Source: Amoeboaphelidium protococcarum X5 (lineage: Eukaryota; Fungi; Aphelidiomycota). Taken from it: DNA of 64,000 nt. The DNA lies in contig JALDTO010000213.1 of the NCBI GenBank assembly GCA_023515725.1, positions 566,280-630,279 of the forward strand. The letters run 5' to 3'. The first letter of the stretch is position 1; each line of letters starts with the position of its first letter. The translations under genes were made by a program, and so were the position numbers. Shown piece by piece: positions 54,959 through 59,707 of the stretch. The notes below the pieces were generated by a model. That model saw only the letters and a program-made list of their open reading frames with translations. It was not told the origin of the DNA and did no database searches.

Positions 54959-56428
54959 TCAAACTGAAACCATAAGAGAGCAATCAATCGCGGTTTTGAT
55001 ATAGAGCTTGATAGAGCAATCCTGATGTTACAAGGATTTTACAGCTGCTTAAATCTACTGAATAATTTTATAGATAGGCATAGAGGTCAATTATAGGATT
55101 ACTTGAATGCTTCGCGCCTTAATATTAACCAAATTTGGAATCAATTTGTTAATTATCAGATTTAAATCGGATTTGGATACTTGCAGTCCAATTTTCAGGT
55201 CGCCGACAGCATTCGTTGGAGCTCCATGATGTTCACAAATCTAAGCAAGGTCGCTAAGCAATTCAATAAACTCTTCAACGTAACGAACCCTCACAAACGT
55301 ACTACCAGCCACAGCAGGCGCGTCAAGCAGTTAAGACTCCCACCTTGAGATTTCACCATACTTTGCGAAACCCTTAGATTCAAACGACAACTTCAAAACA
55401 TGGATATCTGTACCACATCTGAACTTCATTCTCTAATAGATGGAACTTACTCTATCTTCAGAGGGCATCAGACGAAGCACTTTATATCCGACCGTAACAC
55501 TTTAAAATCTAAATTCATACCCAACTAGCATTTACAGCATATTGTCTATAGCATCCGAATTAGTTTCGTAATACGCCTAGATGTAGAGATCTTTAATGAA
55601 GGGCAAAACAGATTTAACAGACTGATCCAAGCTAATTCTCTCAAAGTAGCCAAGATCCTTGTGGGCAAGTGAAACAATCAACATCATCCGAGATTTAATG
55701 TTCACAGAAACAGTTTTTCTTTAAAGGAGCTCTCCAAATTATTCATTGAGTTTCTCGATCATCAGCTCAGTCTCCAATGATACCTGCATTAAGTAGTCTT
55801 GCTCAAGGCGAACGGCGATGCTTTTCTCGTTAGCTGACTATGATCTAGACGCGATCGTTAGGATGCTCACCTTACATTGAATGAACACCTTACCAAATGT
55901 TAATTGTTTCAGTACAAACTACATATCTTTTATGAAATATTAGTCGCGACAGTCACCTTCAAATATGAATTTTAGCCCAACAGAGGTCCATAGCTTTTTA
56001 TGTTTCGCAAAATCGTCAGATAGCGTGTTAAAGACTTGATTGCCCTGCAGTCGATTTAAAGATAGCCTCACCTCGCGCCTAAGAACGATATCTTCTTCAT
56101 GATCCACATCAACAAATCTTCTAAGCTAATCAAAGGCATATTTAAGGAAATTCATTTACAAGCACCACTCTTTGAGCTCCCTATTCTCATCCAAAAGTGT
56201 TTTGATTTTTGGTGATACTAGCTGAAAGGACGTGTAATCTCGACATGACTGAGCCACTTCAGCGAAATATCCTTCAACAGATTATCCTATTCCCGGCTAA
56301 GAAATATCACCGGTAATCTTGGCTGCTATGGAATTGAGTGCGTTTCTATCTAGCGAAAGGAGACCAGCTTGTATTTTCAGTAGTTTCAATGCGATTACTA
56401 GCCAATGAATAATAGTGACCTTTATCAT
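54959..56428 (-). CDS. Putative secreted F-box-like protein, family member B (~489 aa)
   Basis: MIKVTIIHWLVIALKLLKIQA signal-like; LLSLDRNALNSIAAKI...QSVEGYFAEVAQSCRDYTSFQLVSPKIKTLL...EWC; C-terminal VGDLKIG...LVNIKARSIQVI. Entirely missed by the ORF track. Confidence 0.65.
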
Positions 56429-56798
56429 ATTTACGCGTGCTCTATCAATATTGCGGACTGTTCAGAGAGCCTGTTCCCTATTACTCTACAAATAAAAGGA
56501 GAATTTGCTTATCAATAGAGCCATGTAAAAAAGTTTAAATTTCAGCGTCGGAAGTTGAAATTTTTAAATTCCGAATTTGAAGCCCACGTGGTATTAGATA
56601 GTTCACGCGTTTAAATTCTCCTGAAAGTATCAAAGTTGTAAAGTTTATTGAATTCAGGAGTAAGTACTATAATTTAACAAAGTAAATTGACAAGGTCACG
56701 TATATCTAGAGTATTGAATACTCAAATAATAAAATACTAATTTCATTCATCATTTTCATAAAACCAAAACTTCAAACATAATCAGCGTGGGGCACATT

Positions 56799-57359
56799 TC
56801 ATTGACACTTACCAAATAGTTTGTTGCACCCAGTACCGCAGTGCTGATCCGTTGTACCACAATATCCATGTTAGCTGCAGCACTGTGAGCCTGGGCAGAC
56901 AATGGATGAACCGTCCGTAGCAGGACCGCACGTACCATCAGTAGATGTACGTGTCTTTACATCAGCTTTACAGCTCGTATCGTAGTTTTTAAAACTATAA
57001 CTCTTCTGACAACCAGCGCTACAGTGCTGTTCTTCGTTACCACAATATCCCCAGTAGGAACAGCATTGACCTTGAGGACAGAGCTTGCCGTGATTCTTGC
57101 TGATTTTGCCGCAAGTACCATCAGTAGAGGTTGAGAAGCGCATATAGTCGTCAGGGTAGCAGGCATCAGAAAACTCGGATTAGCATCCAACGCCACAAAA
57201 AGCTTCTCCATTGCCACATTTACCACTATTACAGCATTGGCCAGCCGGGCAAGACACTCCATTCCCACACGTAGCCGCGTCAGTCTCAGCGTGAGTAGTA
57301 CCAAGCAGCATTATGAACATCATCAGTGCAAAAGACGTTTTGTTCTAAAATATCATCAT
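56799..57359 (-). CDS. Secreted chitin-binding protein with three hevein/CBM18 domains (186 aa)
   Basis: Signal peptide; CPAGQCCNSGKCGNGEAFCGVGC, CPQGQCCSYWGYCGNEEQHCSAGC and CPGSQCCSQHGYCGTTDQHCGTGC; no catalytic domain. Confidence 0.92.
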
Positions 57360-57702
57360 TTTAATGTAGTTGATTAATTCTATTAATAGGTTTATTTCAA
57401 TTGTATTATATTAAGAAGAGAGAAGAATGTAAGATACTACATTGCTGCGAAACATGTTGTGACTGATAGTAGATTCGACGCGTATCATTGGAGCATGTAA
57501 CGCCTGCTGACCATAATGCGTAACACGAAGTGTGATTTCGCATTAATTTTGCAACGTTACAGACATCTCATGACTAATCTCAAATTTGAGAATGGATAAT
57601 TTGTATATGTATCAAATATGTGCATCAAAAATAAAATCTATTAAATCATGCTCTATATCTATATCAGCGACATTGACAACATCAGTCAGCAACAGGGCTT
57701 CT

Positions 57703-59199
57703 TCAGGATTCAGCCTCGTCTTGTATTCGCTGAAACTAGTCTACCATTTTCACTTGACCAAGTATACTAACACCTTCCGAAAAGGAAGGCATCTAATACT
57801 AAGAGACGATATCCATAAGACGTTCTCTAAAATTTGGAGGGGGCTGATAAACGAAGTCATAAACAACAGAGATGCGTTTAGCTTTAATCAGAGGTAGAAC
57901 TGGAGCAATGTAGTCTGCAAATTCCTGAATCGATTACTCACTTTAGAGAATGTTGATTTGAATATCTTCCATCACTTCCTTACCTTATGGCCATTTTGTA
58001 GCAACCTCCTTCACTACAGAACCAAACATTTAAAGTTCTTCAATCTATGGGCGGAAGATTTGCATCTCAATATTATGAACCGCCGTGTTGTTCAGCTTAT
58101 AAGTGAGCTCTATATCATCAAAGAGTTCGCATTACTCTGCGCATTCAACAACGATACGTTCAACGCCAACTGTAAGAACAAGATCGTTATACATGTGCTC
58201 CATTCCCTCACGGTGTAGCAAGATATCAGTGGCAAACTCAAGGATATAGTGTACGGTTTTAGGGACTTTTTATTCAAACGCCAAAAAGATTTAGTGTATA
58301 TGGTCAGGTACAGTATTTATGTAGCATAACATACGAACAGTTTACCAGTACTTCTCGTATTATGATAAAGTTTCATCGAATACCATTGGAAGACCAAAAT
58401 CTACACCTTCCAATTCTGGCAAATTCAGCAACATCTTCAGAAATATATTCACTTTTACACTAGAATGCAAGTTAGGGAACTGCTCTAGCTCATTCAAAAA
58501 TTTTTGTTCTAAGTATCTGACTTCCATCTAGGAATATTCATCCAAGGAGATAACATTGTGAGTCTAATCACTCTCGATATCAAGAAGGACGTTAATGATA
58601 CTTGATATTTTCACATGAAGCTAGTTGAATTCGATTTCTGTCAAGATTTGCAGTACTTCTTTCAATGATGCAATATCGAGAATAGAAAGCTCTATAACTA
58701 CCAAATTTCGATTCCAGCCATCTCCATACTTGGCAGCAATATCCTAAAGCATTATGAAGAAATCTTTAATACCATCATTCAAATATTCAACCTGTATGAT
58801 ACGACGCGTCAGAATTTACTGTCTCAAATCCGGCATAACAAATTCAGACATTGAACGATATAACTGATACAACATCCGGGACTCCAGGCACCATTAGTTA
58901 GGTAGATGACTAAGGACTCTACTGAATCTACGCGACACTTGCAGCACATTAGCCAGATCTTGAGAGCAATACGGTGATAATCGACGAAAATAGTGATCAG
59001 CCGATTCACCCTTTATAAATTCTGGAGGACTATCAGATTGTGTGTAGAGCTTCTAAGCTACTTCATATAAACTACTGTCAGGCATTTAATCCGCAGGGAA
59101 TGGATCTTCAACAGCACGAAGACGCTTTCTATACCTAGCTGACGCAACCAGTATCGCCATGATGTGAACCATGCACAATAAGGAGATGATGACACGCAT
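57703..59199 (-). CDS. Putative secreted F-box-like protein, family member C (498 aa)
   Basis: Translated end to end with no TGA before 57703-57705. MRVIISLLCMVHIMAILVASA signal-like; MPDSSLYEVAQKL...ESADHYFRRLSPYCSQDLANVLQVSRRFSRVL...QWC; C-terminal MEDIQIN...VLPLIKAKRISVV. Confidence 0.7.
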
Positions 59200-59485
59200 G
59201 ATATCAATTCTATAGATTATACTGTATGTATTGCCAGAATACTAACTATTTAGAATGGAAAAGTAATGAATAATTAAATTATAAAAAAGCTGACTTTGAA
59301 AATAACTCCGACCTGTGATCCAAACACGTTAAATGTTGGTGACCCCTTAGAGTGTGAATAGATATTTATCGATCATTATATCTCAACAACTTTCTAAAGG
59401 CTCTTATCTCTTGCAGTCAATAATTACATTCTAAATAGTAGATCTGCTTAATATAAATAAAAGAGATTAATTTTACTTTTATTCA

Positions 59486-59707
59486 ATGGCAGAGTCTGTA
59501 TTAGGAAGAGTGATTAGGGATTATTCAAAGTAGTCGTCACCTTTTATGGCAATCAATAATATGCTGAATGCTTCTGAAGGGGACTACGTACTTGTTCATA
59601 GGACGCGTCATCCCCATTATGTTTGGTGCCAGTTGCTGAAATTTGATGGACCTCAATTCAAAGTCATTGGTGACGGTTACATTGCCTCCAAATTTGTATA
59701 ATATTGA
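59486..59707 (+). CDS. Stand-alone SH3-like microprotein (73 aa)
   Basis: MAESVLGRVIRDYSKQ...LNASEGDYVLV...VWCQL...GDGYIASKFVQY* follows the SH3 pattern (DY, L..xGD, W, G.(P)..FV). Confidence 0.55.

Follow-up and report, generated by a model that had tools for sequence, protein, structure and literature searches.

What do three co-oriented genes of the algal parasitoid Amoeboaphelidium protococcarum X5 encode, given the prediction that the outer two are secreted F-box-like effectors that hijack the Skp1-Cullin-F-box (SCF) ligases of the host, forming a system with the chitin-binding protein encoded between them? Aphelids are the sister group of the fungi and crash algal ponds, and to our knowledge hardly any of their effectors have been identified. 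The genes lie on the minus strand of a 64,000-nucleotide stretch (the window) of contig JALDTO010000213.1 (GenBank assembly GCA_023515725.1, positions 566,280 to 630,279): gene B (54959-56428; 489 amino acids), the hevein gene (56799-57359; 186 amino acids) and gene C (57703-59199; 498 amino acids). Analysis of this locus and of the genome indicated that B and C belong to a functional, fast-evolving, birth-and-death family that is previously undescribed, and sequence features point to entry of this family into the secretory pathway with a signal peptide and with avoidance of N-glycosylation. The further proposal that B and C are species-specific secreted F-box-derived effectors, working like SSGP-71 of the Hessian fly, is evenly balanced on the sequence evidence.

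The window, at 40% G+C, has nearly no long open reading frames (ORFs) in the standard code but is tiled with them once TAA and TAG (TAR) are read as glutamine, a code reported for A. protococcarum (PMC5304391). TAR codons occupy conserved glutamine positions in the window genes RPL19, XPB and RPA2 (RNA polymerase I subunit 2), and TGA ends these genes. As expected from the original prediction, B and C are nearly invisible in the standard code, and all three genes appear as long minus-strand ORFs under the alternative one. Because B, which has 19 in-frame TAR codons, and C are intact when TAR encodes glutamine, the standard-code reading of the two as broken genes is out. Four runs of one 2021 study, for which the records give neither run type nor infection stage, gave RNA-like contigs on B, the hevein gene and C, with nearly empty intergenic gaps and no joints, and one contig has a poly(T) end at 56727, just below the hevein stop; this pattern suggests three transcription units, each without introns, captured as poly(A) RNA. 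An upstream in-frame ATG of C at 59376 was not preferred as the start, as the region is unconserved in the homeolog and in the other strain and the RNA-like contigs stop at 59245-59272; contigs of this kind cannot fix the start codon of C.

B and C had been proposed to be paralogs, and their similarity is significant (blastp E 1.5e-6 over 239 columns; local alignment z = 15 against 500 shuffles). A third member in the window, gene A (21156-22676, minus strand; 506 amino acids), lies 32 kb away and is homologous to both (z 5-7). The anticipated paralogs elsewhere in the genome are numerous: profile searches of stop-free pieces gave 17 and then 23 loci, both lower bounds, falling into about 11-12 paralog groups in two homeologous copies, as most loci in the assembly are, with some groups in tandem. 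The 16 of these 23 loci that were translated encode proteins of 489-580 amino acids, save one truncated copy. Identity between groups is 13-19% (roughly 16%; one pair reaches 30%). B and C do not group as sisters. Members are annotated only as hypothetical, with no Pfam match to flag them. Database searches matched only A. protococcarum hypothetical proteins, among them MIR68_011453, which is 98% identical to a piece of gene C and, with MP228_010419, is its counterpart. Since these searches were limited by shared words, by length or to a single 52-residue query, and B and A entered them as stop-free pieces (their full-length translations served in the local analysis only), absence of the family from other aphelids is not proven. 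Two other database matches were rejected as repeat artefacts.

The ratio of nonsynonymous to synonymous substitution rates (dN/dS) for homeolog pairs of the family was 0.23-0.46, roughly twice the 0.19 pooled over 12 cytosolic F-box pairs. Between strains, it was 0.47-0.48 for B and C, compared with 0.05-0.15 for neighbouring genes and 0.08 for the hevein gene. Judged from these ratios, the family is under purifying selection and is evolving faster than the controls. Two copies in tandem clusters are broken (L015 661-1700 and L017 1330-2970), one by a frameshift near its 5' end and the other by an in-frame TGA that follows codon 180. A copia-type long terminal repeat retroelement encoding gag, integrase and reverse transcriptase splits one member in the other strain (L075 2558-9114). 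Such broken copies argue for birth-and-death evolution.

Entry into the secretory pathway was judged from a hydropathy heuristic and from the depletion of N-glycosylation sequons. The signal-peptide-like N-termini first noticed in B and C proved to be general, with 16 of 16 members carrying a hydrophobic segment among residues 1-25 (hydropathy 2.15-3.24) compared with 1 of 27 canonical F-box ORFs. The leader of C comprises residues 1-21 (59137-59199, minus strand; end approximate) with a maximum hydropathy of 2.6 over 10 residues, and neither B nor C has a further membrane span after it. In nine family representatives, N-x-S/T sequons were about fourfold fewer than expected (5 versus 22, p 0.0005), whereas Q/D/E-x-S/T controls in the same proteins showed no depletion; cytosolic F-box proteins (46 versus 48.6 expected) and non-secreted window genes (35 versus 40.6) served as further controls. 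Since this depletion is expected only for chains that pass the endoplasmic reticulum (ER) and must stay unglycosylated, it suggests ER transit, and it may help to screen the whole A. protococcarum genome for host-directed proteins. The basic RYRKRLR reported for C is present at residues 22-28, after the leader, and may be a nuclear localization-like signal or a dibasic processing site. It is confined to C and its direct counterparts, and a family-wide nuclear localization signal was rejected.

After the leader, the original prediction placed an F-box split by an insert, an architecture that is clearest in C. On a two-block matrix built from 14 canonical F-boxes of the A. protococcarum genome, the first half (residues 36-51; 59047-59094, minus strand), with the L/M-P start and helix 1, is the best of 488 placements (z 4.1) and is a helix in the AlphaFold2 (AF2) model. 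The second half (residues 79-104; 58888-58965, minus strand), with V88-S89, helix 3, Trp103 and the invariant Cys104, is the best of 489 (z 3.9). Between them lies the insert (residues 52-78; 58966-59046, minus strand), which has the consensus P-x4-T-E-x4-Y-x2-R-V-x2-Y-C and ends at the invariant Cys78. In the family alignment, the two blocks independently rank first of about 490 placements and in the right order (pair z 5.4; 0 of 500 column shuffles). Alone, C has a two-block score of 23.8 bits (p 0.005), where left-out canonical F-boxes span 19-44, and a piece of C matches the Pfam F-box-like family with E 0.006, at 16.7 bits versus a cut-off of 24.3. Alignment to the F-box by hhalign gave P 0.02-0.04 with the insert and, in a post hoc comparison that excluded the insert columns, P 1e-4 over 37 columns, and in the ESM Atlas the top neighbours of a full-length C-type protein were F-box clusters (score 0.90).

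The insert, the Trp-Cys that follows it and the C-terminal motif (D-[LI]-x-I ... [KR]-x-[IV]-x-[IV]), first noticed in B and C, are present family-wide. The insert, of 20-26 residues at the junction of helix 1 and helix 2, is the best-conserved part of the family (P, T-E, Y, R-V, Y-C), and Cys78 and Cys104 are the sole invariant residues, suggesting a disulfide. Cytosolic F-boxes of the same genome tolerate inserts at this very junction (10 residues in L038/L039; about 26 in L062 442-2595 and L063 954-3101). The family also shares with canonical F-boxes (PF00646/PF12937), including the cytosolic ones of this genome, the order and spacing of L-P, helix 1, V-S, helix 3 and the distal Trp. It differs from them in its signal peptide, its scores below the cut-off, its long conserved insert and the loss of two hallmarks, the Glu after L-P and the helix-3 Trp. 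Over 10 groups, the initial L/M/I is kept in 10, the Pro in 5, the Glu in 1, the helix-1 I/V/L/M in 10, the Ser in 9, the helix-3 Trp in none and the distal Trp in 8.

Several results weigh against Skp1-binding effectors. A, B and most other members score at or below 0 bits alone on the two-block matrix; in gene B (within 54959-56428, minus strand) the F-box is strongly degenerate, at -2 bits alone, and recognisable only via the family alignment. No member exceeds the Pfam F-box cut-off (PF00646/PF12937), and members other than C gave no match. Besides the lost Glu and the Pro kept in only half of the groups, the helix-3 Trp is replaced by Phe, Ile or Leu; Pro113 and Trp139 of Skp2 are F-box hallmarks (PMC6052599). 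The ESM Atlas score is borderline, with 125 of 256 features shared. The AF2 model of C residues 31-203, from 25 alignment rows (predicted local distance difference test score, pLDDT, 66; predicted template modelling score 0.48), has a short helix, a helix at 41-54, a loop and helices at 67-86, 90-96 and 100-117, followed by strand-helix repeats. Helices thus occur where an F-box would have them, but a single long helix (67-86) takes in both the insert and F-box helix 2, and the model matched only generic helical bundles. Fold searches (Foldseek against PDB and viral structures, wide VIA-align, Atlas) gave no F-box or other significant match, a motif of about 40 residues scoring low in such searches; a PDB sequence search returned only bestrophin, at a chance level (E 0.4), and a single-sequence AF2 model of mature C, at pLDDT 41, was uninformative. 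Constraint on the F-box region is just marginally stronger than on the C-terminus (dN/dS 0.30 versus 0.34). Finally, ultrastructure of a strain then assigned to A. protococcarum placed the trophont inside the host wall but outside the host plasma membrane (PMC3577820), and a parasite in that position needs an uptake step for its effectors. Of the predicted split F-box, the significant placement of both halves and the insert itself stand, while the motif is degenerate in A and B and found no F-box match through the AF2 model and four fold searches. We consider it very probable that the N-terminus of the family is of F-box ancestry; that at least some members bind Skp1 today is a proposition with about equal chances of being right or wrong.

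The leading alternative, though we hold it less probable than not, is that the proteins are F-box-derived and secreted but that most members are past Skp1 binding, with the insert and the Cys pair, perhaps as a disulfide, serving as a structural or targeting leader, a role that RAYH, CCG or Y/F/WxC motifs have in other effector families. The proteins would then work at the interface with the host, or their host targets would be others. Consistent with this, conservation of the insert, Cys78 and Cys104 exceeds that of the F-box positions, most members have F-box scores no higher than zero, AF2 yields a helical bundle, and conserved motifs that hold a fold are known in chytrid and oomycete effector families (PMC12503489). 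However, the hydrophobic F-box positions (Leu before Pro, helix-1 Ile/Val, V-S and the distal Trp at canonical spacing) have been kept at 16% identity, and C scores as a true F-box. The Synchytrium RAYH/AvrSen1-like and Albugo CCG families (PMC12503489) resemble the aphelid family in being secreted, species-specific and divergent, with one short N-terminal motif of aromatic residues and Cys, but have a different motif and no F-box pattern.

It is unlikely that the insert and Cys pair form a trafficking or redox-switch module inside a working F-box. Such a module would carry the protein across the algal plasma membrane, or would hold the F-box in a closed state that opens only in the reducing host cytosol. 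If real, it would give aphelids their first known host-entry motif.

We think it distinctly unlikely that the F-box likeness is fortuitous, arising from amphipathic helices in an orphan secreted family unrelated to F-box proteins. The likeness does lie below the Pfam cut-off and without a structural match, the insert-excised hhalign comparison was post hoc, and the position-specific scoring matrix came from only 14 F-boxes. Chance is nonetheless hard to reconcile with two blocks that both rank first and in the right order, a result reached by none of the shuffles, and with independent Pfam and language-model signals that agree on the F-box.

The protein encoded between B and C is secreted and non-catalytic, and its three hevein (CBM18, Chitin_bind_1) repeats were borne out (PF00187 E 6e-11, 42.8 bits versus a cut-off of 27.8; lectin structures E 1e-15). 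Repeats 2 and 3 pass the Chitin_bind_1 cut-off; repeat 1 is degenerate (E 0.02) and lacks the usual aromatic binding motif. The gene is under strong purifying selection. By analogy, its product is most simply a wall-associated or chitin-shielding protein. It shares a signal peptide, tandem hevein repeats and the lack of a catalytic domain with the CBM18/hevein lectin-like proteins of Batrachochytrium and Verticillium (PMC3569864, 10.1101/462499), and differs from them in its degenerate first repeat and in that chitin binding and chitinase protection are here only predicted.

That B, the hevein gene and C make up one co-regulated functional unit, combining chitin masking with SCF hijack, is very unlikely. 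The three genes are co-oriented and all encode secreted proteins, the order B-hevein-C is kept in the homeolog and in the second strain, and contigs of all three occur in the same runs. Against this, the genome has 48 Chitin_bind_1 matches and yet only the B-C site, in both homeologs, adjoins a family member; the transcripts are separate, the selection regimes differ (dN/dS 0.08 versus 0.47-0.48), B and C are not each other's closest relatives, and housekeeping neighbours are equally syntenic. A TGTAAC promoter element was found upstream of the hevein gene and of one paralog only, and not of B or C. Because the hevein gene is ordinary and is not co-clustered elsewhere, the three-gene system originally proposed is unsupported, and the hevein gene probably sits as an unrelated neighbour between two old paralogs.

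It is highly improbable that B and C serve the parasite itself as F-box proteins, held by an uncleaved, cytosol-facing N-terminal anchor and working with the aphelid SCF, for although the leaders of A and B are less hydrophobic (2.15-2.27) than the others, the sequon depletion fits only exposure to ER glycosylation and is absent in cytosolic F-box proteins, and fast turnover and species restriction fit host-directed genes.

If B and C are host-directed, F-box-derived effectors, they would pass the ER via the signal peptide, avoiding N-glycosylation, would be released by the trophont where it borders the algal plasma membrane and would reach the algal cytosol. There, the F-box halves may bind algal Skp1 while the insert loops out or packs against these halves, and the divergent C-terminal region of 390 residues may pick differing host substrates for ubiquitination. 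Alternatively, the proteins might occupy Skp1 as decoys, blocking host SCF ligases. Of the original prediction, the paralog family, secretory entry, F-box ancestry of the N-terminus and transcription are supported, as is evolution faster than in controls; an effector function is plausible. In C, the C-terminal region (57706-58887, minus strand; about 390 amino acids) is predicted to consist of alternating strands and helices and, by analogy, is likely substrate-binding. It belongs to no Pfam family and has weak language-model neighbours only; a D-[LI]-x-[IL] ... [KR]-[RK]-[IV] unit is conserved near the C-terminus of the family. Pfam scans revealed no leucine-rich repeat (LRR) family, and there was no LRR fold among the structure matches, the second model being of low confidence.

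Legionella AnkB and Agrobacterium VirF, named as precedents in the original prediction, are F-box effectors of bacteria, which inject such proteins by type III/IV systems and without a signal peptide. The aphelid family does resemble Ralstonia RipG/GALA (PMC4617103) in its several paralogs, F-box mimicry and variable C-terminal substrate-binding region; the bacterial proteins have a canonical F-box and an LRR or ankyrin C-terminus. The closest precedent is eukaryotic, namely the SSGP-71 family of the Hessian fly Mayetiola destructor, in which the cyclin-like F-box is contiguous, LRRs number about 13 and binding to Skp1 has been shown, and some members of which are without an F-box (PMC4617103, PMC7330099). 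Like SSGP-71, the aphelid proteins form a large divergent secreted family of a eukaryotic parasite, with an N-terminal F-box proposed to hijack host SCF. Unlike SSGP-71, their F-box is split by a conserved insert, they have two invariant Cys and the host is a unicellular alga. No LRR and no sequence relationship to SSGP-71 or RipG was found, in searches limited by words or to a single piece.

The genome also encodes proteins that combine an F-box with ankyrin (L065/L066, L071/L072); no clear signal peptide begins at the Met closest to their F-box. Ralstonia RSc1356 is a GALA-type effector. Several infection-induced A. protococcarum transcripts match RSc1356 and YopM (PMC8657485, Table 2), probably via LRRs. 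In the literature searched, we found no paper linking aphelids with F-box proteins, and the dual RNA-seq study is silent on F-boxes. If members of the family bind algal Skp1, SCF hijacking by F-box proteins with a signal peptide would have two independent origins, one among insects and one in an algal parasitoid, and these would be the first SCF-hijacking effectors from an algal parasite on the fungal side of the tree, none having been found in that literature. They would also give a handle on host specificity and on protein passage across the aphelid-alga interface.

Upstream of C and divergent from it lies a 73-amino-acid ORF (59486-59707, plus strand), which is covered by RNA-like contigs of all four runs and which in the other strain falls within a 265-amino-acid gene model, an apparent mis-merge. 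A transposase-like remnant (L002 3-611; IS605/TnpB-like by eye) is present upstream of the C homeolog and absent at the matching position of the window. Elsewhere in the window, an 847-amino-acid protein (34860-37403, minus strand) with a signal-peptide-like leader has 0 N-glycosylation sequons versus 4.5 expected, making it an effector candidate; it has no homology to A, B or C and is helical, with ankyrin-like stretches near its end by eye.

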